In this document: one piece after another, positions 3,705-46,186 of the stretch
Numbering within the stretch: position 1 is the first letter of the stretch
Layout of the letters: each line of letters starts with the position of its first letter
Sequence record: KY555144.1
Strand: one strand, 5' to 3'
DNA: 64,000 nt
Program-made: the position numbers and the translations under genes
Notes under the pieces: model-generated
Seen by the model: the letters and a program-made list of their open reading frames with translations, nothing else
What the model was told of the DNA's origin: nothing
Databases searched by the model: none

Positions 3705-5326
3705 AATCCGTCCCCGAAGACCTGATGGCGCACCTCCAGGAGGAGGTGACCACGCTGGCGACGTGCATCACGATCGTGCGCCAGGACGGCAAGGCGTTCT
3801 TCATGACCGACCACGACCGGCCGATCAAGTTCGAGAACCAGACCTACGTCCCCTACGACTCCTACCAGCGCACGTCGATCCTGATGTCGTCGGAACTGGA
3901 AGTCGACACCGCCGACATCACCGCCTTCCTGACCTCGAACGGGGTGACGCGCGACGACGTGGCCTCGGGCCTGTTCGACTACGCCGCGATCAAGGTCCAA
4001 TTGCTGAACTACGAGCGGCCCGAGGACGGGGCGACCCTGCTCCGCAAAGGCACGTTCGGCGAAGTGACCATGAACCAGGACGAGACCTTCTCGGCCGAAA
4101 TCCGGGGCATGACCCAGGTCCTGACCTACCGGGTCGGGGAGACCTACGCGCCCGAGTGCCGGGCCGACCTCGGCGACCGCCGCTGCAAGATCGGTCTGAT
4201 GCCTGAGGAGTGGCAGGCCAACAAATACTACGGCCTCGACGCCTGCGTGCTGGGCGAACTTGTGGCCCCGACGTCGTTCGTCAATCCCGTGGTCGTCAAC
4301 GGCAACTTCGAGGACGGCGCGCTCAACGCCGTCGTCACCGCGCCGACGGGCTGGGTGGCCTATGGCGATCCGACCAGCCGCTGGGTCTACAAGCACGACT
4401 GGTACAATCTGTCGCGCCCACAGGTCGGCAACCAGTTCATCGCCGCCACCCGCACCTCGATCTCCGACAAGCAGGAAGTCGCGGGCATCTACCAGGACAT
4501 CAACCTCGTCTCCGCCGGCGTGCCCGCCGCCGCGATCGACGGCGGCCTCTGCCGCGTGCGCTACAAGTCCTTCGCCGCCTGCCTCAACAACCGCGCCCAG
4601 TCGCGTGAGCGCCTGACCTGCATCAAGGCCGACGGCTCGGTGGAGACGATCTGGGACACCGGCGAGATCAAGTACCCCGAGGACCGCTGGATCGCGGTCA
4701 ACGCCGACGACATCCTGATCCCGGCGGGCACGCGCGTCCTGCGCATCGACCTGTGGTCCAAGAAGCGCAGCGTCCACGAGGAGGGCGCGGCCTATGACGG
4801 GATCAGCCTGTCGATCAACCTGCCGGCGGGCACGGCCGGCAACGCCCATGTCTATGGCGGGGTGATGTTCAAGTGCATCCAGGCGGGGATCAGCGGCGGC
4901 ACCCAGCCGGCCTGGACCAACGAACTGGGCGCCACCTATACCGACGGCACGGTCATCTGGCAGTGCGTGACCAACTACAAGAAGGTGGGCACGGTCGCCA
5001 CGGTCGCCTCCAACAAGTCGTTCACCTCGACCGACATCACCGAGCCGGCCGGTCACTATGACGGCGGCGTGCTCTACTGGGAGACCGGCCGCAACGCCGG
5101 ACGCGCCCAGGAGATCAAGACCTGGGCCGCCAACCTCTTCACGCTTTTCCAGCGCACCTACTATCCAATCACGGCGGGCGACCGCTTCGTGGTCTATCCC
5201 GGCTGCGACAAGCGCCGCGCTACCTGCGCCGACAAGTTCCACAATATCCACAATTTCCGCGCCGAGCCCGACGTGCCCGGTCAGGACATCTACTACCGCA
5301 CGCCCAACGCTCCGGAGCAGGAATGA
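3701..5326 (+). CDS. Baseplate hub protein (DUF2163/BR0599 family) with an internal insertion
   Basis: N-terminal TTLATC...FTDHDRP-like segment, CRADLGD.RC, C-terminal PGCDKRRATCADKFHNIHNFRAEPDVPG. Confidence 0.85.
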   Translation: MKSVPEDLMAHLQEEVTTLATCITIVRQDGKAFFMTDHDRPIKFENQTYVPYDSYQRTSILMSSELEVDTADITAFLTSNGVTRDDVASGLFDYAAIKVQLLNYERPEDGATLLRKGTFGEVTMNQDETFSAEIRGMTQVLTYRVGETYAPECRADLGDRRCKIGLMPEEWQANKYYGLDACVLGELVAPTSFVNPVVVNGNFEDGALNAVVTAPTGWVAYGDPTSRWVYKHDWYNLSRPQVGNQFIAATRTSISDKQEVAGIYQDINLVSAGVPAAAIDGGLCRVRYKSFAACLNNRAQSRERLTCIKADGSVETIWDTGEIKYPEDRWIAVNADDILIPAGTRVLRIDLWSKKRSVHEEGAAYDGISLSINLPAGTAGNAHVYGGVMFKCIQAGISGGTQPAWTNELGATYTDGTVIWQCVTNYKKVGTVATVASNKSFTSTDITEPAGHYDGGVLYWETGRNAGRAQEIKTWAANLFTLFQRTYYPITAGDRFVVYPGCDKRRATCADKFHNIHNFRAEPDVPGQDIYYRTPNAPEQE

Positions 5327-35371: not shown

Positions 35372-36160
35372 CTACTCTTGAGGGGCGGCGGGCCGTTGCA
35401 GGCGCGCGTGCATGGCCTCGATCTCCTCGTCCGACAGGGGCCGGCGGCCCGTGGTCTTGACCTCGCCACGCCAGATGACGTCGGCGAGCTTGAGGAACGC
35501 CTTGGCGAGCTTCTGCTTGTCGGTGTGCCCGATCGCGCGCTGAAGGCCCTCGGGCCAGCGCGGCGGCAGGGCGTAGAAATACATCAGCCCCGGCCGGGTC
35601 CAGACGTCGACGGCGAAGTCGCCCGCCTGCCGCTTTCCCACCGCGAACGACTGGTCGCCCAGCATCGCGACGTTGTTCTCGTCGTAGTAGCCGATCCCCA
35701 GCCTGATCTTGTCGATCTCACTGTCATAGGCCAGCCACAGGCAGCGCCCGTCGCCCAGGGGGACGTTCTCGATCTCCCAGTCCTGGGGATGGCCCCAGAC
35801 CGCGTCGTGGGCTTCGCGGATGGCGTCGGCCAGCATGCCGGTGATCGTCTTGGGCGAGACCGAATCCCCGACCACCAGGAACGAGCCGGGCTCGATCTCC
35901 AGGGTCTTGTCGACCCCGAAGTGCTCGGCCAGCCGCCCGGCCTTGAACGAGAAGCCCTCGCGCTCGATGCGGTCGGCGATCTCGTAGGCGAATCCAGGCT
36001 TGAGGTTGAGCGTCATCACGTGCGAGACGTTCAGGCCCGAGGCCGATTCATGCCCGAGCCCGATCTGGATCGAGTGGGTCTCAGACGTCACCAGGGCATA
36101 GAGGAAGCCCCCGGAGGGCCGGGTCGGATAGGCGACCCGGCGGGAGAAGAGAAGGGTCAT
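35372..36160 (-). CDS. Hypothetical protein (262 aa)
   Basis: Normal codon usage, co-oriented. Confidence 0.65.
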   Translation of the reverse strand: MTLLFSRRVAYPTRPSGGFLYALVTSETHSIQIGLGHESASGLNVSHVMTLNLKPGFAYEIADRIEREGFSFKAGRLAEHFGVDKTLEIEPGSFLVVGDSVSPKTITGMLADAIREAHDAVWGHPQDWEIENVPLGDGRCLWLAYDSEIDKIRLGIGYYDENNVAMLGDQSFAVGKRQAGDFAVDVWTRPGLMYFYALPPRWPEGLQRAIGHTDKQKLAKAFLKLADVIWRGEVKTTGRRPLSDEEIEAMHARLQRPAAPQE

Positions 36161-36162
36161 GA

Positions 36163-36615
36163 TTACTCCTGAAGGCTTTCGTAGAAACTAACCAGGGCCT
36201 TGAGGTCCTTTAGATTGCCACTGTTTTTGAGGCGATTGGCTTTCCAACTCACGATCACGACGTTTCCAGGGACATAGCCTTGGGTGTTGTCGATACGATC
36301 AAGAGATGGCGAGTGATCGTGCATCCGTCCGGAACCCGCCGAAAGACGAAGTCCTAGCGCCGGACAGACTTCGGGAATCGTGAGGTCAGCTTCCGTCAGC
36401 GTGAAGGGGATGCCTGCCTGCTTCGCTCGTCCACGCGCGGTCGACAGGAGGGCAGAAAGAAACCCTCCCGTCGCATAGCGGAACCGCCGTTTAGCGGAAC
36501 GACAAACCGAACACGTGCGTCGCCGCCCATTATTTCTCGACCGGTCTTTGGAGAACTGGTCGAGGGTTTTACGAACTCCGCAGGCATTGCATCGCTGCGT
36601 GATCACAAGCGCCAA
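36163..36615 (-). CDS. HNH-type free-standing endonuclease with N-terminal CxxC/CxxC
   Basis: CNACG...CSVC, CPALG, PSLDRIDNTQGYVPGNVVIVSWKAN; visibly more AT-rich than neighbours. Confidence 0.7.
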   Translation of the reverse strand: MALVITQRCNACGVRKTLDQFSKDRSRNNGRRRTCSVCRSAKRRFRYATGGFLSALLSTARGRAKQAGIPFTLTEADLTIPEVCPALGLRLSAGSGRMHDHSPSLDRIDNTQGYVPGNVVIVSWKANRLKNSGNLKDLKALVSFYESLQE

Positions 36616-38306
36616 TACCTGCCGTTGAAGGTGATCAGCGCCCGCTTGCCGTTCGGGTACTGCACGCAGTGGGTGTGCGCCCAGGACGAGGGGCCGGTGT
36701 TGTAGCCCATGTCCAGCTTCGAGGTCGTGCCGGTGTTGTAGGCGCTCTCGAAAATGCCGGGCGAGTGGGTATGACCAAACGTAGTCTTCGGGCCGATCTT
36801 GGCGAACTGCTGGATGTTGCCGCGCGAGCCGTTGGCGCCGTTATGCCCGTGGTTGGAGTGCTCGACCCCGCCAACGACGCAGGACTCGTCCTCGCGCAGG
36901 AACTTCACGCCGTTGCAGTTCCAGACGTCGAAGGCGTTGGTCATCACCTCCTCGAAGATCGAGAAGTTCTTTTCGCCGGTCCGGATCGAGGCGTAGACCG
37001 CCCGCTGGCAGGTGAGGAAGAACTCGGCGTTGACCGGGTCGGCGCGGTAGTCGGCCGTCTTCAGCCATTTGTTGAGCGCCAGATCGTGGTTGCTCTCGAC
37101 CACCGTGACCTTCGAGTCCGGGGCCTGCCGGCCCAGGATGGTCAGGAACATCGCCACCTCGCGTAGTTCCTGCTCGACGCTTTCGGAGCCCTTGACATAG
37201 AGCCGGAAGCGATCGTGCGGATCGGCGATGTTGTGGTGGTTGCGCGCCCGGAAGTCGGAGACGTCGTGGACGAAGATGTGCTCGGGCCGCAGGACGTCGA
37301 TCATCGACGGCGTCGCCACGCTACCCCACACCCGGCTCCCGTCGGCCGAGCGCTGCTCGGTCGGGAAGAAGCCGAAGGTGGCGGCCGACACCTCGGGATC
37401 GATCTGCGCCACGTGGACGTCGCCGGGCGTCAGGCAGGCCACGCGATGGCCCTCGGTGACCACGCCGTCCTTGACGAAGACGTCCAGGTCATAGAACGAG
37501 CCGTCGGTGTCGCCCAGCAGGTGGCGGCAGAAGAACTTGCCGTCCTCGTCGACCTCGACCAGCACCGCGCCCAACTGGTGGTGGAAGCTGGCCTTGATCC
37601 CGGCCTTCTTGGGAACGTAGTTCGGCTTGGTGACCGCGCCCGTCGTCATGATCTGCTTGGACGGGGTGTGCTTCATCGTCGGAACGCTGACGAGTTGCAC
37701 CTTGGCGTGGGGGAAGATGCCCCAGCGCTCGCGGGTGTAGGAGTGGAAGCCCGACAGCGGGTTCTCGGCCGTGGGGAGGGTGTTCATCTCGCCGCAGAAG
37801 TCGATCCGGTCGGCGATCCGCACGCGCTCGGCGACGAGGTATTCCATCACCCGCTTGTGGAAGAACGCCGCGTGCTTGGCGTGGTCCTCGAACAGGCGCT
37901 TGGAGTAGGTGAAGCCAGCGATCATGATCTCGCACGGCGCGTCCCGGCGCAGGTGCTCGGCATAGGCCTCCAGGTTGTCGACGAACTCCTCGTGGATGTG
38001 CGTCGAATCCTGGGCCGAGGACAGGATGAACCGCCGGCGCCCGGTGGTCTCATCCACCGTCACGGTCCGGGCGGCGGGCGCCGGCCGGTGCGACAGCGGG
38101 TCCTTGCGCATCGAGTAGAGGCGGTTCTGGAGCGTCGTGCGCTTGACGCTGTACTTGCGCGAGAACGCCCGCTGGCCGCCGGCCTTCTTGACCATCGCGT
38201 TCAGTTCTTCCGGCGACACCGAGTAGATGTCGAACGGACCCTCGGCCGGCAGGGCGGCCTTGGGCTTCTTGCCCGCCTTGGAAGCGTGTTCGAACTCAGC
38301 CGGCAT
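36603..38306 (-). CDS. Calcineurin-like metallophosphoesterase with N-terminal HTH-like region
   Basis: GDVH, HDVSDF, ESNHD, HGH and GHTH metal-binding motifs. Confidence 0.7.
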   Translation of the reverse strand: MPAEFEHASKAGKKPKAALPAEGPFDIYSVSPEELNAMVKKAGGQRAFSRKYSVKRTTLQNRLYSMRKDPLSHRPAPAARTVTVDETTGRRRFILSSAQDSTHIHEEFVDNLEAYAEHLRRDAPCEIMIAGFTYSKRLFEDHAKHAAFFHKRVMEYLVAERVRIADRIDFCGEMNTLPTAENPLSGFHSYTRERWGIFPHAKVQLVSVPTMKHTPSKQIMTTGAVTKPNYVPKKAGIKASFHHQLGAVLVEVDEDGKFFCRHLLGDTDGSFYDLDVFVKDGVVTEGHRVACLTPGDVHVAQIDPEVSAATFGFFPTEQRSADGSRVWGSVATPSMIDVLRPEHIFVHDVSDFRARNHHNIADPHDRFRLYVKGSESVEQELREVAMFLTILGRQAPDSKVTVVESNHDLALNKWLKTADYRADPVNAEFFLTCQRAVYASIRTGEKNFSIFEEVMTNAFDVWNCNGVKFLREDESCVVGGVEHSNHGHNGANGSRGNIQQFAKIGPKTTFGHTHSPGIFESAYNTGTTSKLDMGYNTGPSSWAHTHCVQYPNGKRALITFNGRYWRL

Positions 38307-38997
38307 AGAGAAGCTCCGGTTTGGCGCTGACCGGCTTGGACCAATCCCAGACGTACCAAGCGTAGGCGAAGCGCGGGGCGCCCTTGGTGCCGGCGATCCA
38401 GCGGGGGCGGTGACGAAGGGTGACCTTCGCGGTGAAAGCGGGGTGATCGAACAGGTCCGCGCGCGAGCGCGCCGCGTCCCATTCGTGGCGGCAGAGGAAG
38501 GCCACGAGGCCCTGGTCGGCCTCCATCAGGTCCAGCGCGTGGCGCGCGGCGCGCTCGGCGTCCTTGCCGTAGGGCGGGTTGGTGATGATCGCGTCCGGAC
38601 GCGGCGGCAACGGCGTGCTCTTGCGCTCCTCGCCCTTCTCGTCGACAACCGTCTCGGGCCGGACCTTCAGCGCGCCCAGGCGGTCGAGGTCGGCCGGCGT
38701 CAGCTTGAAGAAGTCCTCGACCGCGTCGACCTCGAAGCCCTCGTAGCGGTGGATGTCCGTGGCGAGGACTTCCTGCACGAAGGGCTTGAGCGGCGTGGCG
38801 ATGGCGCCGTTGCCGGCGAAGGGCTCCCAGGCGAAGAACGGGGCGAAATCATCGCCCAGGGCCTCGATCAGGGCGTCGAAGGCCGGCCGAGGAGTCGGGT
38901 AAAAGTCCAGCGGGGTCCTGGCATATCCGGAGGCGCCCAGCATGGAGGGGTCTTTGCGACCAGCATCGGAGAGAGACATGGTCGTGAGGGATGTCAT
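38296..38997 (-). CDS. Amino (N6-adenine-type) DNA methyltransferase
   Basis: DFYPTP, WEPFAGNGAI (motif I), IITNPPY (motif IV). Confidence 0.82.
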   Translation of the reverse strand: MTSLTTMSLSDAGRKDPSMLGASGYARTPLDFYPTPRPAFDALIEALGDDFAPFFAWEPFAGNGAIATPLKPFVQEVLATDIHRYEGFEVDAVEDFFKLTPADLDRLGALKVRPETVVDEKGEERKSTPLPPRPDAIITNPPYGKDAERAARHALDLMEADQGLVAFLCRHEWDAARSRADLFDHPAFTAKVTLRHRPRWIAGTKGAPRFAYAWYVWDWSKPVSAKPELLYAG

Positions 38998-39054
38998 GGT
39001 TAACGAAGGGTGTCAAGATTCACGACATTGACTGTCGTGACGCAGCACGTTAAT
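38996..39054. promoter_or_regulatory. Divergent promoter region
   Basis: Minus-strand motif at 39012-39027, TTAACCAT at 38996-39003, inverted repeat TCACGACA/TGTCGTGA, and plus-strand TTGACT-N17-TAATCA (-35 at 39028). Confidence 0.65.
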
Positions 39055-39059
39055 CAGGA

Positions 39060-39690
39060 GGCAACGGGCCGTCCTTCTGCATTAGCCCCGCCGCCGCGCC
39101 TTCCAGGCGGCACGGGCCGGGACGGTGGTTGGTGACGAGCAGGCCGAGGCAGCGGCGGGCGAGTCGAAGGAGAACCCGGCGAGCGGCGGAAGGCGTCGTT
39201 GACGCCCTCGGACTCGACAAGCACGTGGTGATGCCGGAAATCACCGCGATCGCGCGGACGTCTGGACGTTGCTAGGCGTAAGGCAGGCCTGCCGAGAAGT
39301 GGAAACGGCCGGGGCGGGCGGGACTTGATCTCGTCCGCCTTTCCGCCTAAGCTTCCCTCATTGCAGGCGCAGCACCGCCCTTCGCTAACGGCCCCGAGGG
39401 GTACGCAAGGGCTAGAAGCCTTGCCTGGGACAGGACTGCCTCTGATCCAGGAACGCCCTGGGCCGCGTAGCGCCCATGACGCGAACGCCGGCCGAGAATG
39501 GGCGACTAGGCGTGACGGCGGCCAGAGGCCGCAGCGACATTCCAAGCTCGATAGAGCGATCGGCGGGCCGGGGCGAAAGCCCTGTTTCGAGAGCCAGGGC
39601 AACCCGTCATAGGTCCTGGTCGGGCGACGAGGCAGCAAGTCCCGCGAACGGAGCCTCTGAGGTGGCGTCACCAAGATGCAGCAGACGCAA
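39060..39690 (+). ncRNA. Candidate ~630-nt highly structured ncRNA, family unknown
   Basis: Own promoter and terminator; no protein-like ORF; 5'/3' closing helix (CTGCAT 39077-39082 with ATGCAG 39676-39681); many local stems and GNRA loops. Confidence 0.6.
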
Positions 39691-39721
39691 AAAGGCCCCG
39701 ATCGCGAGATCGGGGCCTTTT
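39689..39721. terminator. Bidirectional intrinsic terminator
   Basis: AAAAA-GGCCCCGATC-GCGA-GATCGGGGCC-TTTT. Confidence 0.9.
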
Positions 39722-39726
39722 CATGT

Positions 39727-39815
39727 TGGAGCTTCGGGAGGGACTCGAACCCTCATAGGTGTTCCCACCAGCAGAGATTTGCAATCCCGCGCCTAACCTC
39801 TCAGTCCACCGAAGC
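39727..39815 (-). tRNA. tRNA-Cys(GCA) with long variable arm
   Basis: GCTTCGG/CCGAAGC acceptor, U73, encoded CCA, TT-GCA-AA loop, GAGGG-TTCGAGT-CCCTC T-arm, V-arm GGTG-GGAA-CACC. Confidence 0.88.
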
Positions 39816-39862
39816 ACAAAAGGACCTCGACGCCCGAAGGCCCGAGGTCCGATCCGTAACCA

Positions 39863-39990
39863 GGGGAGGGCCGTAGCTGTCCCCTGACCCTGAACGACAG
39901 GTGGCGGGCTTGGTCGTCATCCCGTCAGGCTCGCGGCGCCGCTCGCCTGAACCGCCGATATGCCACGAGGGCAGTGATCCGCAGGTCCCC
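39863..39990 (+). ncRNA. 6S RNA-like molecule
   Basis: Rod with ~20-nt central bubble: GGGGA/TCCCC, CTGTCC/GGGCAG, GGCGGGC/GCTCGCC; GTCCCCTGACC and CCTGAACC resemble recalled 6S motifs; G-U pairs favour the + strand. Confidence 0.5.
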
Positions 39991-39999
39991 ACAAATAGC

Positions 40000-40034
40000 A
40001 AAAAGGCCACGATCCGCGAGGACCGTGGCCTTTT
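40000..40034. terminator. Bidirectional intrinsic terminator between the 6S-like and GOLLD-like RNAs
   Basis: AAAAA-GGCCACG...CGTGGCC-TTTT. Confidence 0.85.
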
Positions 40035-40040
40035 CGTTTT

Positions 40041-40913
40041 CCGATGGGCTGAGACTACACCCATCAGCAATCCCGCTTCGAGGATTATTCCCCAGGTGCG
40101 ACCCCAGGTATTCCCTCGACGTCCACCAGACCCCTTGCGGTAGTCCAGTCCGAGATCATCGCCGCCGTTCTTGCGCACCCCGAAGGGATTGCGGGTCTGG
40201 CGTTTGACCCATCATGGCGAACTACTCGACAGTTCCTTCCCCGCTGGGCTTGCGACCCACTCACCGGCGCTAACCGGCTGACGAAGCTCTTCCTATCGAC
40301 ACCTCGCGGGCTTGCGACCCTTGAGATGACTCCGTTACCCGAAGGCCGGAGCATTTGGCGACTTACGTCCGCCACTGGACCAGTCTTTGCGTTTTTCATC
40401 GAAGCGGGGATTGAACCCGCGACCGACAGCTTAAGAGGCTGTTGCACTACCACTGTGCTATTCGCAAACCCACCAAGACGTGCTGGTCCAGTTGTTCCCA
40501 GAGCTTTTGACCCCGGAAATGCAACACGCCTCATATCTTTCGCCTTGCGGGCTACTCGACTGCTCTTCAGGACTCCGTCTCCCCCAACCTTTCGGCCAGG
40601 ATGCCCAGCACCCCTCGAACTGAAGCAAAGCTCTTCACCGCGAAGTGTCGAACCCTGCAACCCAAACGGTTATCCGTACTCCCTAGACACGCTTGCACGG
40701 GATAGTCCGCTTGCGACGGACTGGCGGTTAAAGCCTCGGAGTTACCCCGGCCCCGCCTTGTCTCCCACGGTCTTCAGGTCTATCCCCTTTTGCAAGAGGC
40801 GGCCAGCTTCCCAGCCCGGACCCGTCGGCTTCCTCTGTCCTCTTGCGAGGTCGGGCGGCCTATGGGAGACCGTCCCTGTCACCCCGTCGCCGGGGCTTTC
40901 GTCAGAAGCGACG
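40041..40913 (-). ncRNA. GOLLD-like giant structured RNA (~870 nt)
   Basis: Promoter TTGACG-N15-GCTAGA upstream and terminator downstream; about ten GCAA tetraloop hairpins plus GAAA/UUCG loops on the minus strand; central tRNA-like domain; segments resembling recalled GOLLD consensus. Confidence 0.6.
40396..40467 (-). tRNA. tRNA-Lys(CTT)-like domain with defective acceptor stem, embedded in the GOLLD-like RNA
   Basis: Good D-arm, ACAGC-CT-CTT-AA-GCTGT anticodon arm, GCGGG-TTCAATC-CCCGC T-arm; only 4 Watson-Crick acceptor pairs and no CCA. Confidence 0.7.
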
Positions 40914-40920
40914 ATGACGT

Positions 40921-41030
40921 TCTAGCGACAGCCCACGTCGTCGTCAACGACTTTTTCCGTCTCGATGTCGAATTTTTTCGACAGTCGTGGATGACGACAG
41001 TGCTTGACATTCTCGTAAGCCCATGCTAGG
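40921..41030. promoter_or_regulatory. Divergent Caulobacter-type sigma70 promoters (GOLLD-like RNA on -, tmRNA on +)
   Basis: Minus: TTGACG (40942-40947)-N15-GCTAGA. Plus: TTGACA (41004-41009)-N15-GCTAGG. Confidence 0.75.
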
Positions 41031-41036
41031 TGTCGG

Positions 41037-41406
41037 AAATCGTTGTAATTCGGACAACGGAACTGGCGGCAAGACAGGGGTGCGAATCCCCTCGCCTCCA
41101 CCATCGACGCCCGGCGCTGGGAGTACGCGACTCCTGGGCAGGGAGTGTTACCCTGGCGGGCTGCGGCCCGAGCCAAAGGTAGCCGGGCGTCGTTGATGGG
41201 GGCGACTAGCTTTCGATTGGCGCTCGGGACTGAAAGACGCAACGGTGGGTGACCTCCACATCGGCTTGCCGGTGATCGGGTCAGGCAACAGTAAATGTCG
41301 CCGACAATGACAACGACGTCGTGGCTTTCGCCTCGGCTCGTGAAGCCATCGCCGCCTAATAAGCGGTAGAGGAGCCCGCCGGGAGCTTGGCAACAGAATC
41401 CCGGCA
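41037..41406 (+). ncRNA. ssrA: Two-piece circularly permuted tmRNA (alphaproteobacterial type)
   Basis: Acceptor piece ends CGCCTCC-A-CCA at 41103; coding piece starts GGGGGCG at 41198, giving a 7-bp stem with G3-U70; tag frame (V)ADNDNDVVAFASAREAIAA followed by two stops (41297-41362); GGCAACAGAA near the 3' end. Confidence 0.9.
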
Positions 41407-41540
41407 ACCCCCTTTCGCAGGCGGGAACACCAACAGGCGATCTGTCGGGCGACCGATTTCCGATCCGTGTTCCCGTCTTCGAAAGGTGGTCAGGCCTACC
41501 CTCTTGGTGTGCTATCCAAGGGTCTGGCCACTTTACAGAA

Positions 41541-41619
41541 CGCGGGGTAGAGGAGTCCGGTTGTCCTCGTCTGGCTCATAACCAGGAGATCGTGGGTTCA
41601 AATCCCACTCCCGCTCCCA
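41541..41619 (+). tRNA. tRNA-Met(CAT), partly initiator-like
   Basis: C1xU72 mismatch, CT-CAT-AA loop, GTGGG-TTCAAAT-CCCAC T-arm, encoded CCA; only two G-C pairs next to the anticodon loop. Confidence 0.85.
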
Positions 41620-41900
41620 ATGCGAACGCCGGCTGTTGAGAACGACGGCGTGACAAGCTCGGAGAGAACGAGCACTCCAGTCCGGGGTATGAGGCCGGAC
41701 TAGCGGACGCCGTAGCGATTGCAGGCGTGACACCCGGAGATAGCGGGACCGGCTTTCCGAGCCGCATGCTCGGCGCGTAAGACCGCAGGCCTCGGCCATC
41801 GGGCAGTGTCAGGGGATGAGGCTAGTCCTCGGCTAACCACCTAGCGGTGAAGCTAGGGCATGCGGTTCGGAAAGCTGGGTTCGCGGTTCGTCCGCTACGA
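41620..41900 (+). ncRNA. Structured RNA domain of unknown class, directly 5' of the permuted tRNA-like element
   Basis: Stems ACGCCG/CGGCGT, GCTCG/CGAGC, AGTCCGG/CCGGACT, CCTAGC/GCTAGG and long-range CCGCATGC/GCATGCGG. Confidence 0.5.
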
Positions 41901-41977
41901 GATGGAGATGTCGCCGGTTCGAGTCCGGCAGGTCCCCCAAAAGGAGGCCTTAGCTCAGTCGGTAGAGCGCTCCTATC
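41901..41977 (+). ncRNA. Circularly permuted tRNA-like element (3' half upstream of 5' half)
   Basis: T-arm and acceptor 3' strand with CCA at 41913-41939, then acceptor 5' strand and D-arm at 41943-41969; acceptor and anticodon stems both pair between the halves. Confidence 0.55.
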
Positions 41978-41985
41978 CCACCTTT

Positions 41986-42070
41986 GGTACGGTGGCTCGA
42001 CAGGTAAGGCATCGGCCTCATAAGCCGAGGGTTCGTCCCAATCCTGGTTCAAATCCAGGTCGTACCTCCA
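41986..42070 (+). tRNA. tRNA with CAT anticodon (Met or Ile2), long variable arm and U73
   Basis: GGTACGG/TCGTACC acceptor, TCGGC-CT-CAT-AA-GCCGA, 14-nt variable region, CCTGG-TTCAAAT-CCAGG, encoded CCA. Confidence 0.88.
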
Positions 42071-42144
42071 AATCGACGCTTGACCCCAGGCCGCAGGCTG
42101 CTAAGCTTCCCCGGTCGGGATCGTCCCGCGTCCTTTCCAAGGTC

Positions 42145-42175
42145 AAGCCCCCGGAGCTTCGCTTCGGGGGCTTTT
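42145..42175. terminator. Intrinsic terminator closing the tmRNA/tRNA transcript
   Basis: AAGCCCCC...GGGGGCTT-TT. Confidence 0.8.
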
Positions 42176-42528
42176 CAGTTCTTGACCACCCGCAGGCGCC
42201 GGGCCTCGATGGCGCGCTCCTCCGCCGCCACGCGCGAGACGTCTTGCAGGTGCGCCTTGGCGATCAGGTCGGGCGCGCCCACGGCCCGGAAGGGCACCTT
42301 GACGGAGAGGTCGACATAGCGCCGCAAGAGAGGCTCGAATTCCAGACCCCGCGCCTGGGCGATCCGCGACAATGCGCCGGCGACGATCGCCACGACCAGG
42401 ACGTTGGTCGGGGTCTCCTTGGTCAGGGTCCAGATGCCCGGTATCGATTGTCCAGGATGGAGTTCCTGCCGCGACACGTCATCGGCGGCGGCGCGGAAGA
42501 GGTTCTCGTAAGGGACGTTTTCGAGCAT
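42175..42528 (-). CDS. Hypothetical protein (117 aa)
   Basis: Normal codon usage; converges on the RNA island terminator. Confidence 0.6.
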   Translation of the reverse strand: MLENVPYENLFRAAADDVSRQELHPGQSIPGIWTLTKETPTNVLVVAIVAGALSRIAQARGLEFEPLLRRYVDLSVKVPFRAVGAPDLIAKAHLQDVSRVAAEERAIEARRLRVVKN

Positions 42529-42607
42529 GCGACAACGATAGCGATCTTTTTCCGCCTGTCTACCCTCTACTCTTGATAGTAGTAAAGCCCTGATTTCAAC
42601 ACAAGCG

Positions 42608-43000
42608 CTAAAGACGTCCGCCGTAATAGTCCCGCCACATCCCCTCCCAATAGTCGATGTGGTAGTCGGTGCAATCCGGGCAGAGCCGGCGATCCCTGTT
42701 GGGGTCCTCGCCCTTGCCGTCCCAATGGTAGCAGGTCATCGACGAGACCATGCCCAGGCGCCAGAAGGTCCCACATCGCTCGCAGCCGCCCAGGGCGATT
42801 TGCTGCATCTGCCGGTGACCGTTCCATTTCGCCAGCGGCCGGGACCAGAGGAGATCGACCACCGCGTGGCGGATGCTCCCGTACTGGGTGAGCCCGACTT
42901 GCACGACCTTGCGCTTACCCGTCCGCCGGGACACACCGCCCATGAACCGGTAGGCGTCGGTGTAATAGATGCGCACCTTTGGGAGGCGGAGCTTCTTCAC
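42608..43000 (-). CDS. Hypothetical protein with CxxC...CxxC (130 aa)
   Basis: GTG start overlaps the helicase stop (GTGA); CERC and CPDC. Confidence 0.55.
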   Translation of the reverse strand: MKKLRLPKVRIYYTDAYRFMGGVSRRTGKRKVVQVGLTQYGSIRHAVVDLLWSRPLAKWNGHRQMQQIALGGCERCGTFWRLGMVSSMTCYHWDGKGEDPNRDRRLCPDCTDYHIDYWEGMWRDYYGGRL

Positions 43001-44943
43001 GTGTCCATGACCTTTGCGATGTTGTCCTCCTTCTCCTTGGCGGCCTGGGCGATGCGTGCGTCGAGCGAGCCGTTCGCCACCAGGAAGAAGCACATGATTT
43101 TCTCGGCTGTCTGCCCGATCCGGCAGGCGCGGTCCTCGGCCTGCTCGATCAGAGTCGGCGTCCAGTCCCCCTCGGCGAACGCCACGTCGTGCGCCCGCGT
43201 CATGGTGAAGCCTACACCGGCGGCCTGGAGGTTGCAAACGATGACCCGGCAGGTCTCGTCGTCCTGGAACTTGTCGACCTGAAGCTGGCGCTTGTTGACG
43301 GGGGTCCCGCCATAGATCATCGCCGGATTGTAGTCCGCCAACGCCTCGGCGAGCGCCCTGACGACGTCGGAGTGGTAGGCGAACAGGATCAGCTTGTCGC
43401 CGCCGTCGAGGAAGTTCTTGACCCAGGGGATGATCGCCGGGAGCTTGGCCATCCCCAGTTCGCGGCGGACGGCGGCGATCTCCTCGAAGAGCACCGCCAC
43501 GGCCGGCGGCGCGAGCCCCAGAACGGCGGCGGCGTAGTCGAGATTGAGCGCCCGCGAGTTGGGCTTGTCGGGATCGCCGTCCTGTCCCACCGCCTTGTCG
43601 AAGCCGTAGCGCTGGGCCGTCTCCAGGATCGACAAACCCAGGCGGATGTCGCGCTGGTCCTCGGTCTCGTTCTCGCCGGCCAGCACCGTGGCCTCGTAGA
43701 GCTTCAGCGCCTGGGAAAGCTCGTCCTCGCGCGCCACGACCTCGCGGATTTCCGGGCTGTCGAGGAGGACGATCTGGCGGAACTTCGGCGGAAGCTCGGG
43801 TAGCACCTCGCGCTTGTTCCGCCGCACCATGAAGGTCGAGCGCAGCCGATAGCCCAGTTCCTCCAGGTTGGAGGCCCCGGTGAAATTGTAGGCGCCGTGC
43901 TTGCCACGCGTGTTGTCGAACCAGCCGTCGCAGTAGCGGTAGCCGAAGTCGTTGTAGCTCTTCCCCAGGCCGTCGGGATCGAAGGCCTTGACGATCGACC
44001 ACATCTCGATCGGGCGGTTCATCATCGGCGTGCCCGACAGGAACACGCGGCGCTTGGCGTCGACCGGGTTGAACCAGATGTCGGCCAGCACCGGCTCGCG
44101 GTTCTCGGCCTCGGCCTTCTTGATCTCGGCGGCGTTGGCTTCCTTGCGCTTCTTGCGCACCGCCGCCTTCGAGCGCGCATCCATCTGCTCGCCGCCGAGG
44201 ATGAAGATCGTGCGCCCGCTGTCGGGGGTCTTGATCGCGTGACATTCGTCGCAGACCAGGAGGTCCCACGGCTGCTCGTGGATTTCCTTGGAGAAGCGTT
44301 CCAGGATGTCGTAGTTGATGATCACGACATCGGTCTTGGGCCACCAGCGCGGGTGGACGACCTTCTTGAAACGCGGCTTGCCGTTCTTGTAGAAGCCGTC
44401 GCGCACGGTCTCGCGATAGCGCGTCTCGGCGATCCCGACGCTCAGGCCCTTGCTGCACCAGAGCAGCCATTCGCGCCGCCAGTTCTCCTTCAGCGAGGCG
44501 GGGACCACCACCAGCACGCGGCGGATTTTCTTGATCGCGTTGGAGACGCCGATCGCCTGGATCGTCTTGCCCAGACCCGGCGGATCGGCGATCAGGGTGT
44601 CGCGCCGCCCCGGCAGGGTGGCGAAGTCGATCCCGGCCCGCTGGAAGGGCTTGAAGTCCCAGCCCTTGGCCTCGACCGCCTTGGAGATCGGCGGCCAGAA
44701 ATCACAGTCGGCCTTGTAGGACAGCGCCCGGCTGATGTTGGCCAGATGCTCGCGGCGCCCCAGTTCGTCGAGCGCGTTGGTCTTCCAGACCACGCCGGGC
44801 ACCGCCAGGGCGACGGCCGGGTTGTGGGTGATCAGCGCCCGGCGCGGCGGGCTCCAGGTGAAGCCGGCCTCCTGGAACCGCTTGCGGTCTTCCCATTCGG
44901 TGACGGCCCAGAAGTAGCCGTCGCGATAGTCGATAAAAGCCAT
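42997..44943 (-). CDS. SNF2-family (SMARCAL1/HARP-like) helicase
   Basis: ADPPGLGKTIQ, VVVPAS, DECH, LSGTPMMNRP, MVRRNK, AAGVGFT, QAEDRACRIGQ. Confidence 0.92.
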   Translation of the reverse strand: MAFIDYRDGYFWAVTEWEDRKRFQEAGFTWSPPRRALITHNPAVALAVPGVVWKTNALDELGRREHLANISRALSYKADCDFWPPISKAVEAKGWDFKPFQRAGIDFATLPGRRDTLIADPPGLGKTIQAIGVSNAIKKIRRVLVVVPASLKENWRREWLLWCSKGLSVGIAETRYRETVRDGFYKNGKPRFKKVVHPRWWPKTDVVIINYDILERFSKEIHEQPWDLLVCDECHAIKTPDSGRTIFILGGEQMDARSKAAVRKKRKEANAAEIKKAEAENREPVLADIWFNPVDAKRRVFLSGTPMMNRPIEMWSIVKAFDPDGLGKSYNDFGYRYCDGWFDNTRGKHGAYNFTGASNLEELGYRLRSTFMVRRNKREVLPELPPKFRQIVLLDSPEIREVVAREDELSQALKLYEATVLAGENETEDQRDIRLGLSILETAQRYGFDKAVGQDGDPDKPNSRALNLDYAAAVLGLAPPAVAVLFEEIAAVRRELGMAKLPAIIPWVKNFLDGGDKLILFAYHSDVVRALAEALADYNPAMIYGGTPVNKRQLQVDKFQDDETCRVIVCNLQAAGVGFTMTRAHDVAFAEGDWTPTLIEQAEDRACRIGQTAEKIMCFFLVANGSLDARIAQAAKEKEDNIAKVMDT

Positions 44944-44994
44944 GGACGCCGCACGTGGTTAACGCGCGGACTGTCGCCCATCACGACACTAGAT

Positions 44995-45030
44995 GTCAAG
45001 ATTCATGACTTGACCCAAGGCGTTAACCAT
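44995..45030. promoter_or_regulatory. Recurring motif (minus strand) plus TTAACCAT in a divergent intergenic region
   Basis: GTCAAGATTCATGAC at 44995-45009; TTAACCAT at 45023-45030. Confidence 0.65.
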
Positions 45031-45081
45031 GTCACGTTCGCCGCACGGCCGAGAGATCGGCCGGTCACAAGGAGAACTATC

Positions 45082-45381
45082 ATGACCCTGATCGTCAAGA
45101 TCATGTCGGGCGAGGACCTGCCCGACACCGCGCCCGAAAAGCGCTTCACCCTCCACGCCGGCGTCAAGTCCTTCCATCCGGTGGTCCAGCCCCCGGAGGC
45201 TCCCGGCGGCCAGCCCTACTGCTATGTCCGGCTCTACATCGCCGACCCGGTCAAGACCGCCGCCGTGCCCGGCTTTGTCGAGCATGAGGTCACGGTCGAG
45301 GCGCCGGGCAACGTCTATGTGATGAACGAGGCCGGCAAGACCATCGCCACCTGGACCCCGCCCTGCGGCAGGCCGAACTAG
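45082..45381 (+). CDS. Hypothetical protein (99 aa)
   Basis: AAGGAG RBS, ATG at 45082. Confidence 0.7.
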   Translation: MTLIVKIMSGEDLPDTAPEKRFTLHAGVKSFHPVVQPPEAPGGQPYCYVRLYIADPVKTAAVPGFVEHEVTVEAPGNVYVMNEAGKTIATWTPPCGRPN

Positions 45382-45614
45382 GTTTCGCCAGCTTCCGAAC
45401 CCGGCGCGTCATCCCAGGCCGCCGGGTTCTTCTGCCAGCCCATCCGCTCCAGGACGGCTTGACAGTTCAGAGGCGCACTACCGTCCTTGGGCTCGTCCCC
45501 CAGGACCAGGAAGACGAACCGCCGCCCCTTGGGAGCCCGGTAACGCAAGCGCAGGTCCCCGTCCTCCGAGACGATCTCGCAAGACGTCATATTGACGACT
45601 TCACCAGCACGCAT
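45378..45614 (-). CDS. Hypothetical protein (78 aa)
   Basis: ATG overlaps the upstream stop. Confidence 0.55.
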   Translation of the reverse strand: MRAGEVVNMTSCEIVSEDGDLRLRYRAPKGRRFVFLVLGDEPKDGSAPLNCQAVLERMGWQKNPAAWDDAPGSEAGET

Positions 45615-46186
45615 CACGCAGCTTCCTTGATTTCCCGAGCCCGCTCGGTCCAGATCATCAGGTCGTAGTCGGCCGGGCTCATCCCGGCGCGATCGGCCAG
45701 CGCCAGGAAGGCCTCCTCCAGCCGCCGATAGACCTTGGCGTTGCCCGGCGTGGCCTTGGGGACCTCGACCCCGTGTTCGGCCAGATGCGCCAGGATGTGG
45801 GTGTCGAGCGCCGCCAGCCGCTGGTTGGGGCGCGAGTGCATCAGGAACATTCGGGCCGTCTTCGGTCCGACGCCGTGGATCGTCTCGAACTTCTCGACCG
45901 GGTCGGCGCGCAGGTCCAGGCCCCAGACGCTCTGGGTGAAGCAGGCCTCCAGGCGCCCGTACTGACCGATGCCGAACATCTCCATGTAGCGCCGCAGCTT
46001 GTCCTCGTGGATCGCGCACCGCAGCTTGTCGAACGGCGAGACGCCGGTCATGGCGTAGAGCATACGGTCAAGCTTGGCGGCCTGGACGTCGGCGGTCTTG
46101 CCCGCGACGATGCAGGAAAACAGCCACCACTCCTCCAACTCGGCGTCGGTGCGGTCGAACTTGGTGACGTTGCGCGGGTCGATCAT
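45614..46186 (-). CDS. HhH-GPD superfamily DNA glycosylase-like protein
   Basis: IHGVGPKTARMFL helix-hairpin-helix with Lys, then AALDTHI with the catalytic Asp. Confidence 0.72.
   Translation of the reverse strand: MIDPRNVTKFDRTDAELEEWWLFSCIVAGKTADVQAAKLDRMLYAMTGVSPFDKLRCAIHEDKLRRYMEMFGIGQYGRLEACFTQSVWGLDLRADPVEKFETIHGVGPKTARMFLMHSRPNQRLAALDTHILAHLAEHGVEVPKATPGNAKVYRRLEEAFLALADRAGMSPADYDLMIWTERAREIKEAA

Follow-up and report, generated by a model that had tools for sequence, protein, structure and literature searches.

The window analysed here, a stretch of 64,000 nucleotides from sequence record KY555144.1, belongs to the genome of Ccr5, a phiCbK-like prolate siphophage (Dolichocephalovirinae, Shapirovirus) of ~219 kb that infects Caulobacter; adding 62000 to a window coordinate gives the coordinate in the Ccr5 record. 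We found that this window carries a phage-borne, alphaproteobacterial-type two-piece transfer-messenger RNA (tmRNA) gene with alanine identity elements. Comparison with related sequences indicates a true phage copy, maintained by selection, of the two-piece tmRNA gene (ssrA) of the Caulobacterales. We consider it likely that the gene specifies a working trans-translation RNA under phage control; our confidence is lower for any specific benefit that the phage would draw from it.

Two kinds of model identify the gene. ARAGORN calls a permuted tmRNA at 41011-41450 on the + strand, with the tag VADNDNDVVAFASAREAIAA followed by two stops, and the Rfam model of permuted tmRNA (RF04321, tmRNA_permuted) aligns over its full length (1-213) to 41041-41359 with 71.9 bits (gathering threshold 47; E = 7e-12). 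A preliminary description of this DNA, made from the letters alone, had recognized a phage two-piece tmRNA in permuted order and had proposed ARAGORN as a check; both programs bear it out. Chance is excluded by the E-value together with compensatory changes that preserve the structure across 16 related sequences. The Rfam scan of the window detected no riboswitch in the gene.

The gene has the permuted order of an acceptor piece, a 94-nt intervening segment, and then the 5' acceptor strand with the mRNA-like domain; all elements described here lie on the + strand. The acceptor piece (~66 nt, 41038-41103) was delimited from the Rfam alignment and RNAalifold, and its 5' end was placed at ~41038 on the basis of the promoter position, the start of an RNA-seq contig, and the boundary, at 41039, of homology to phage BL57. 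Within it the Rfam alignment locates the 3' strands of P2 (CGUUG 41041-45, UUCGG 41049-53, GCG 41066-68 and CAA 41070-72), followed by a T-arm with a 5-bp stem and the 7-nt loop UGCGAAU (41076-41092) and by the acceptor 3' strand CGCCUCC (41093-41099), the discriminator A41100 and an encoded CCA (41101-41103). The acceptor 5' strand GGGGGCG (41198-41204) forms seven base pairs with 41093-41099; G41200 stands opposite U41097, so that the 7-bp stem with the G3.U70 alanine determinant, as previously noted for this DNA, is present in the sequence. In the loci fetched for phages Rogue and BL64, ACCACCA (~1558-1568), with its tandem CCA, takes the place of ACCA after the acceptor 3' strand.

The coding piece (~209 nt) runs from 41198 to ~41406. 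Its 3' end is uncertain, as ARAGORN extends it to 41450; we set the limit from the end of the pseudoknot PK2 and the end of the BL57 homology at 41406. A D-loop analogue with an invariant UCGA runs straight into P2, the anticodon arm being absent there, and the 5' strands of P2 occupy 41217-19, 41221-23, 41230-34 and 41240-44. PK1 follows at 41245-41282, with S1 formed by GUGG 41245-48 and CCAC 41256-59, S2 by GACCU 41251-55 and GGGUC 41278-82, and a hairpin inserted in loop 3 (41260-41273). The tag frame begins at GUC 41297-99 or GCC 41300-02 and extends to 41356, and it ends, as the preliminary description had it, in tandem stops (TAA TAA, 41357-41362), which sit in the loop of a helix-5-like hairpin (GCCGC 41351-55 / GCGGU 41363-67). 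PK2 (41372-41405) has S1 GAGC 41372-75 / GCUU 41385-88, S2 GCCGGG 41378-83 / CCCGGC 41400-05, and a conserved AACAGAA loop. Folding of the single sequence by minimum free energy (MFE), whether as precursor or as two pieces, failed to yield the T-arm, and we relied on comparative folding. The limits of the gene are given a natural definition by phage BL57, which is 98.9% identical to Ccr5 over 41039-41406 and unrelated to it on both flanks; we take these homology boundaries as the bounds of a functional unit, and they nearly coincide with the limits first given for the element (41037-41406).

The gene is conserved across the phage subfamily. A 461-nt region containing it is complete in 17 phiCbK-type records at 98.7-100% identity, falls to 84-87% identity in the group of Rogue, BL10, RBC8, RBC11, RBC63 and BL64, and is 71% identical in Colossus. 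Phage Karma, which matches the window at 99.9% over 36000-46000 (Ccr5 itself at 100%), has a gene 100% identical to that of the window, and phiCbK differs from Ccr5 at three of the 461 bases, two of them in the promoter spacer and one in the tag (41304). RF04321 recovers a permuted tmRNA at every related phage locus tested (7 of 7, then 7 of 7 more), including those where ARAGORN is silent, with scores of 57.7-111.6 bits; the relatives tested were BL57, BL10, RBC8, Rogue, BL64, Colossus, CcrPW, Bajun, Kikimora and Domovoi, the Rhodobacterales phages Ruegeria V10 and RcXuper, and two IMG/VR contigs. The order tRNA-Cys, tmRNA, tRNA-Met, tRNA-Met is shared by all the Dolichocephalovirinae phages of Caulobacter or Brevundimonas examined, and is seen in Bajun, BL10, Rogue, Colossus, CcrPW, Kikimora and Domovoi.

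Covariation was assessed with RNAalifold and with our own helix-table scripts on 16 sequences, comprising 12 subfamily phages or IMG/VR relatives, two Rhodobacterales phages and two hosts. The G3.U70 pair is invariant in all 16, while the fifth acceptor pair is G-C in nine and C-G in seven, and the two outer pairs of the T-arm take up to four pair types. P2a covaries, and P2c changes from CAACG/CGUUG to CGACG/CGUCG in Colossus and CcrPW and to CGGCG/CGUCG in the IMG/VR locus L084; the helices that hold the two pieces together (P1, P2a and P2c) are thus backed by covariation. In PK1, S1 is GUGG/CCAC in Ccr5 and UAGG/CCUG or UAGG/CCUA in Colossus and CcrPW, and the third pair of S2 is C-G, U.G or U-A depending on the phage. 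The hairpin inserted in PK1 changes from AUCGG/CCGGU to GCCAG/CUGGU in BL10, RBC8 and Rogue, whereas Bajun lacks it. S2 of PK2 is GGCGGG/CCCGCC in Colossus, GGUGGG/CCCACC in CcrPW and GGAGGG/CCCUCC in the host, and its S1 covaries too. These compensatory changes across helices indicate that the RNA is under selection and is not a decaying copy.

The intervening segment (41104-41197, 94 nt) is presumed to be excised. Its predicted fold is a four-way junction with an 11-bp closing stem and an MFE of -55 kcal/mol (z = -3.8 against shuffled sequences). Many double changes preserve the closing stem across phages (RNAalifold columns 99-106 / 217-224), and the length of the segment ranges from 36 nt in Domovoi and 51 nt in L084 to 126 nt in Kikimora, a close relative of Domovoi. 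Since the closing stem alone is conserved, and both length and interior vary, our reading is that the segment would consist of a processing helix plus dispensable insertions.

The tag frame is intact in 13 of 13 phage homologues. It comprises 15-20 codons, starts with (V)(x0-3)NDN, and ends in a hydrophobic residue, AA and a stop; differences in length are always whole codons. Ccr5 and Karma share the tag VADNDNDVVAFASAREAIAA, which with its optional first codon reads (V)ADNDNDVVAFASAREAIAA (19-20 codons). phiCbK and BL57 have VAANDNDVVAFASAREAIAA, BL10 has VASNDNDVVAYASAREAIAA, and Rogue, RBC8, BL64, Bajun and L084 have VAANDNAPFAVREAIAA; the remaining tags are VAANDNNEVSYALAA in the locus L092, VNDNDAPVMEQLLAA in Colossus, VNDNDAPVMEQRLAA in CcrPW, and VEASNDNFAAGERVLLAA in Kikimora and Domovoi. 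The host tag is ANDNFAEEFAVAA (13 codons), so the phage tag is indeed the longer one, as had been stated. Cellular tmRNA tags span ~8 to 35 residues, and the 19-20 of Ccr5 fall within that range. Position 41304, in the third tag codon, is the sole difference between Ccr5/Karma and phiCbK inside the transcribed gene: the codon is GAC (Asp) in Ccr5 and Karma and GCC (Ala) in phiCbK and BL57, which gives ADND or AAND before and within the NDN motif.

The ambiguity over the first codon, marked as (V) in the preliminary description, is genuine, as GUC and GCC could both serve as start. The host context is AAAU|GCG AAC GAU AAC and that of Colossus is AAAU|GUC AAC GAC AAC. Because host and Colossus align codon for codon after AAAU, GUC (Val) appears about twice as likely as GCC to be the resume codon. 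The distance from PK1 is 13-14 nt for GUC and 16-17 nt for GCC, compared with 11 nt in the host. Resume codons nearly always begin with G, and GUC is also the triplet that precedes the resume codon of E. coli, which leaves the GCC alternative open.

The tag also bears on where a tagged protein would be sent. SspB-type adaptors, such as SspB of E. coli and SspB-alpha of Caulobacter, bind the N-terminal NDN of proteobacterial tags, and in engineered E. coli tags longer spacers led to better delivery to ClpXP by SspB. The Ccr5 tag has an N-terminal (A)NDN, as in the host, and a C-terminal AA, with 6-7 extra residues between the two sites. As both motifs are present, the sequence argues for kept SspB and ClpX recognition and not for rerouting. 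Of the earlier suggestion that the divergent tag may keep ClpX recognition while changing the adaptor, the first half is therefore favoured by the C-terminal AA, and the second is disfavoured by the retained NDN motif.

The likeness to the host molecule extends to the overall plan of the RNA. We used the host-tag pattern to locate tmRNA genes in 55 Caulobacter-group genomes, where ARAGORN reads ANDNFAEEFAVAA; the corresponding Rfam models are RF01849 and RF04321. The two-piece tmRNA of Caulobacter was reportedly described by Keiler, Shapiro and Williams in 2000. The Ccr5 gene and ssrA of Caulobacter crescentus (vibrioides) have in common the permuted order, the 7-bp acceptor stem with G3.U70 and ACCA, an unusual T-loop (UGCGAWU), PK1 before the tag, PK2 with the AACAGAA loop, and a tag that starts with (A)NDN and ends in AA. 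Phage and host tmRNAs are nevertheless only 56-66% identical, which indicates that the phage gene is old and not a recent acquisition. They differ in the intervening segment (30 nt in the Caulobacter host, 36-126 nt in phages), in the middle of the tag (DVVAFASAREAI in Ccr5, FAEEFAV in the host), and in the GUC (and GCC GAC) that precedes NDN in Ccr5 and is lacking in the host. Ccr5 has the hairpin inserted in PK1, whereas the host has an extra hairpin after the stop codon that is missing in the phage; the stops are tandem in Ccr5 and single in the host, and acceptor pair 5 is flipped. The Ccr5 gene, moreover, lies under a phage promoter and adjoins no smpB.

The absence of smpB from the window, noted at the outset, extends to the phage group. 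A tblastn search with E. coli SmpB against 50,697 phage records (E <= 1) returned 68 matching records, including SmpBs of Gram-positive phages at 42-47% identity, and none from a Caulobacter or Brevundimonas phage, although a very divergent SmpB would escape such a search. Without a phage SmpB, the phage RNA would have to use that of the host and so compete with host tmRNA.

A predicted sigma-70-type promoter, read from the sequence, precedes the gene on the + strand (TTGACA 41004-41009, a 17-nt spacer and TAGGTG 41027-41032). The pattern CTTGACA-N17-TAnnnn occurs at the same distance from the acceptor piece in Ccr5, BL57, BL10, RBC8, Rogue, Colossus, CcrPW and L084; its spacer letters vary among these eight homologues though its position is constant. 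Bajun and Kikimora have a comparable upstream TTGAC and TATA motif, noted by eye. A generic promoter scan passed over 41004-41032, where the -10 box falls outside its rule.

Expression was assessed from assembled Logan contigs of four small RNA-seq runs on infected cells from one 2023 study (X1 to X4); the contigs are unstranded, give mean depth per contig, and include the tmRNA gene in all four runs. The four runs contain 76-79% of the sampled words from 40000-42100. In X4 a contig starts at 41034, two bases past the -10 box, and 40900-41033 is uncovered; in X3 the contig starts at 40970. Contigs continue uninterrupted from the tmRNA gene across two tRNA-Met(CAU) genes that lie downstream on the + strand (41541-41619 and 41986-42070) and are possibly co-transcribed with it; a terminator-like hairpin follows the second of them (42157-42169). 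This contig pattern fits transcription from the predicted promoter.

Taken together, these observations lead us to propose the following course of events. A single precursor would be transcribed from the gene's own promoter, possibly through both tRNA-Met genes to the terminator-like site at 42157. The acceptor stem, extended by the stem of the intervening segment, would bring the encoded CCA end and G1 together; host RNase P and 3'-end processing enzymes would cut at G41198 and after CCA41103, removing the segment, and the ~66-nt acceptor and ~209-nt coding pieces would stay paired by the acceptor stem (P1) and P2. Host AlaRS would charge the molecule via G3.U70 and A73, and in the infected cell host SmpB and EF-Tu would bring it to ribosomes that have stalled on broken mRNAs. 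Translation would resume, likeliest at GUC, adding ~20 residues that end in AIAA; the tagged product would be marked for ClpXP, probably with the aid of SspB via NDN, and the ribosome would be freed at the tandem stops.

The likely benefit to the phage would be a rescue capacity under its own control, at a time when host tmRNA is limited by the cell cycle and mRNAs or tRNAs are perhaps damaged by infection, which probably produces broken mRNAs. Caulobacter tmRNA is degraded at the swarmer-to-stalked transition, RNase R and SmpB are under cell-cycle control, and the phage prefers swarmer cells. A rationale based on the cell cycle or on loss of host tmRNA, such as the preliminary description had offered, is plausible, and placement beside initiator and elongator tRNA genes fits a role in support of translation. 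In the host, tmRNA influences the timing of replication, and deletion of ssrA is viable (PMC8119881).

Several observations weigh against this reading and need to be interpreted alongside it. The Ccr5 gene scores below the gathering threshold (50 bits) of the alphaproteobacterial model RF01849 (alpha_tmRNA), which likewise has no listed match in BL57, BL10, RBC8, Rogue and BL64. The threshold is passed by Bajun (57.4), Colossus (53.5), CcrPW (66.8), L092 (61.3), Ruegeria V10 (112.6) and RcXuper (106), and the Ccr5-type gene is accordingly a divergent member relative to this model, likely on account of its long intervening segment and PK1 insertion. The register of P2b in the Rfam alignment (ACAA/UGAA) is non-canonical in Ccr5; a shifted register, UUCGG/CUGAA, suits the Caulobacter phages and is weakly supported in other sequences, and an alternative local hairpin is possible (41041-46 / 41054-59). 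An intervening segment three times as long as that of the host may defeat host processing enzymes. The contigs of the tmRNA gene have a mean word depth of ~160-620, like neighbouring genes and unlike the adjacent GOLLD RNA, and in X1 and X2 one long contig bridges the intergenic gap, so that carry-over of DNA or read-through is possible. Finally, processing, aminoacylation (charging) and tagging, as well as proteolysis and benefit to the phage, are inferred.

Another use of host SmpB deserves consideration. The phage RNA could be a competitor or decoy that binds SmpB (and AlaRS and EF-Tu) and so damps or redirects host trans-translation, phage tagging being secondary or differently fated; its purpose could also be to spare phage or host products from the host tag. 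The expected competition for host SmpB described above is in keeping with this, as is a tag whose middle is wholly unlike that of the host. There is also a precedent in the mycobacteriophage DS6A, whose tmRNA consists of the tRNA-like domain (TLD) only, since a molecule of that kind is a strong inhibitor of tmRNA and may act by titrating SmpB (PMC4131195, PMC11915505). A pure decoy, however, needs no tag frame, yet conservation over deep divergence takes in the frame, its NDN start and AA-stop, PK1 and the stretch ahead of the resume codon, and the tag changes length by whole codons only. We therefore judge a decoy unlikely as the main role of the gene.

The conservation of the gene also bears on whether it might be a passenger or relic, that is, a copy of host ssrA or a remnant of an integration site with little or no function. 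Phages of the phiCbK type are reputed to be lytic, although the announcement of Senya and Shash gives integrases in those two relatives. In favour of a relic, temperate elements often bear tmRNA fragments, ssrA being a common integration site (PMC9004378, PMC4131195); the gene was, in addition, overlooked by GenBank annotators and by the original phiCbK genome paper. Against a relic stands the completeness of both pieces, where a 3' fragment would be expected of a remnant, and the fact that at 56-66% identity to the host the helices are compensated and the tag frames are intact. Position and promoter are kept from Ccr5 to Colossus and CcrPW, synteny reaches the Brevundimonas phages, and no frameshifted or truncated tag or broken acceptor stem was seen among the 13 phage homologues. 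A passenger is thus very unlikely, and the narrower idea of an integration-site remnant was rejected, as both tmRNA pieces are complete and conserved.

It is similarly improbable that the locus serves chiefly as scaffold or precursor for other RNAs, whether a stable small RNA from the intervening segment or the downstream tRNA-fMet and tRNA-Met, whose maturation it might assist. The segment is unusually long and stable, with a covarying closing stem, and the tRNA-Met genes always lie downstream on the same strand, as such a role would have it; its length and interior, however, are unconserved, and retention of the closing stem alone is what a processing helix predicts. A protein encoded on the opposite strand is hardly credible: a long mechanical open reading frame (ORF) of 161 aa exists (40922-41407, -) and the BL64 record annotates a counterpart, BL64_127c, but at ~63-66% G+C spurious long ORFs are expected, the region is conserved in the manner of paired RNA helices, and 27 of 28 Caulobacter phage records have no coding sequence (CDS) there. 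Neither the 161-aa nor an 81-aa ORF of the minus strand has a Pfam match, and minus-strand protein genes were rejected as candidates. In BL64 (PV745554.1), the hypothetical protein BL64_127c lies opposite the tmRNA at 1419-1760 (-) of the locus and probably reflects a false CDS call.

The existence of the gene is already on record, and the novelty implied by the preliminary description was overstated. A survey of 18,146 phage genomes found 402 with a tmRNA, and 53 of 133 distinct tmRNAs were two-piece (Buchholz et al. 2022; PMC9004378); its Table S1 lists a permuted tmRNA for phiCbK, CcrKarma, CcrMagneto, CcrSC and CcrBL9, and the Karma gene is identical to that of Ccr5. The genes listed for these Caulobacter phages belong to the same family and occupy the same genomic slot as the Ccr5 gene. 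A tmRNA is also annotated in the Brevundimonas phage Bajun (ON529858), and a 2026 announcement mentions one in the Caulobacter phage Shash (PMC13459779). The 2012 genome paper on phiCbK, by comparison, states that Rfam found no functional RNAs beyond tRNAs, the phage entries of a 2014 tmRNA survey are limited to mycobacteriophages and Bacillus phage G (PMC4131195), and phage names are absent from the supplements of PMC11915505. Among 28 Caulobacter phage records, 27, including Ccr5, Karma and phiCbK, carry no feature at the tmRNA, the other being BL64 with its hypothetical CDS; of the records compared, only that of Bajun names a tmRNA at this place. The earlier listings give presence alone, as an ARAGORN call, and we found in them no description of structure, tag family, promoter, SmpB dependence or function. 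The anatomy, tag family, promoter, presumed reliance on host SmpB and covariation appear to be described here for the first time. In the literature searched, we found no demonstrated function for a tag-encoding phage tmRNA.

Among the closest known systems are other phages that carry a tmRNA. The OM43 phage Melnitz and the pelagimyophages are large lytic phages with a complete permuted tmRNA of alphaproteobacterial type behind a phage promoter, and no phage SmpB is reported for them (PMC9004378). The same roles, upkeep of hijacked translation or protein tagging, have been suggested for the Melnitz tmRNA and are, as for Ccr5, proposed only (PMC9004378). Melnitz is a T4-like myophage with a glutamine riboswitch in the 3' domain of its tmRNA, whereas Ccr5 is a prolate siphophage without a riboswitch, and the Ccr5 tmRNA matches the lineage of its host whereas that of Melnitz points to a host switch. 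The mycobacteriophage tmRNAs resemble that of Ccr5 in being phage-borne ssrA genes in tRNA-rich genomes that depend on host SmpB (PMC4131195). They differ in being one-piece (Bxz1 group) or tagless and TLD-only (DS6A), and in their actinobacterial hosts; a TLD-only molecule of the DS6A kind inhibits, whereas the Ccr5 gene retains a conserved tag frame.

tmRNAs similar to that of Ccr5 are also found on uncultivated contigs. Among 55 IMG/VR loci matching the motif AAAUGUCGC....AAYGAYAAY, ARAGORN called 28 tmRNAs, nearly all on uncultivated contigs, with tags that include AANDNNVDLALAA, AANDNRPAVSEAMRIAA and AANDNDLMDMRLAA. Several of these genes lie within tRNA gene arrays with 6-17 members. Two-piece tmRNAs of this type thus seem to be common in phages, with the caveat that some of the IMG/VR contigs could be host fragments at prophage ends.

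The tRNA genes beside the Ccr5 tmRNA have features of their own. The tRNA-Cys(GCA) gene at 39727-39815 (-) is 89 nt long and the second tRNA-Met gene 85 nt. Each has an encoded CCA and folds with a long variable arm, a feature atypical of tRNAs for Cys or Met. The Rfam score of the tRNA-Cys is low (33.8 bits), and both long-arm tRNAs are conserved beside the tmRNA across the subfamily.

Upstream of the tmRNA gene, and divergent from it, lies a full-length GOLLD RNA (Rfam RF02032) at 40046-40532 (-), with 171.2 bits (gathering threshold 150; E = 2.5e-46), followed by a 17-bp terminator hairpin (40036-39999, -). It is unannotated in Ccr5. In the runs described above its word depth was ~3,900-4,800 in X3 and X4 and, at its highest per contig, at least 25,000 in X1 and X2, compared with ~160-620 for the flanking genes. 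BL57 also carries GOLLD. The 3.3-kb loci of BL10, RBC8, Rogue, BL64 and Colossus and the 6-kb locus of Bajun showed none, and a literature search for GOLLD and Caulobacter returned nothing relevant. The Ruegeria phage vB_RpoS-V10 (MH015255.1; 147 kb, Rhodobacterales) has GOLLD at 543-976 (+), with 151.4 bits, immediately before a tmRNA at 1147-1538 (+), in locus coordinates; the two are on one strand in V10 and divergent in Ccr5. A general linkage of GOLLD and tmRNA was rejected, as no GOLLD was detected in 13 IMG/VR tmRNA loci (135 kb). The adjacency is thus recurrent yet limited to Ccr5-type phages and Ruegeria phage V10.

Nested in GOLLD is a tRNA, at 40395-40468 (-) in Ccr5 and at 788-861 (-) in the BL57 locus (L008). 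Over 94 aligned bases the two differ only at five adjacent positions in the anticodon loop, which reads CUCUUAA in Ccr5 (Lys-CUU) and CAUCCUA in BL57, called as Gly-UCC, with an abnormal A33 and U37. Records of close relatives alternate between tRNA-Lys and tRNA-Gly at this site. To judge from these sequences, this looks like targeted variation confined to the anticodon loop.

What the gene means for the biology of these phages depends on how it is used. By analogy with known tags, its own promoter and the NDN and AA sites, set 6-7 residues further apart, might make the phage tmRNA a phage-tuned tagging channel, an idea that we hold only tentatively and consider rather doubtful. If true, the channel would be active at points of the cell cycle with little host tmRNA and SmpB, or during cleavage of mRNAs and tRNAs by defence nucleases; together with tRNA-fMet, tRNA-Met and the long-arm tRNA-Cys it would form an RNA island for the takeover of translation, which in Ccr5-type phages and Ruegeria phage V10 would include the abundant GOLLD RNA next to it. 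If the gene merely tops up rescue, it would be an ordinary auxiliary gene, comparable to phage tRNAs. Caulobacter and phiCbK would also provide a genetically tractable system for GOLLD, an RNA whose function is unknown, and this may prove more valuable than the tmRNA. Trans-translation in the host is well studied with respect to two-piece tmRNA, SspB, ClpXP and the link to the cell cycle (sources including PMC8119881), and the phiCbK group is an unusually good test bed for phage tmRNA function, as it offers clean gene boundaries, a promoter, natural tag variants of 15-20 residues, among them a single A/D difference between phiCbK and Ccr5/Karma, and an expected need for host SmpB.

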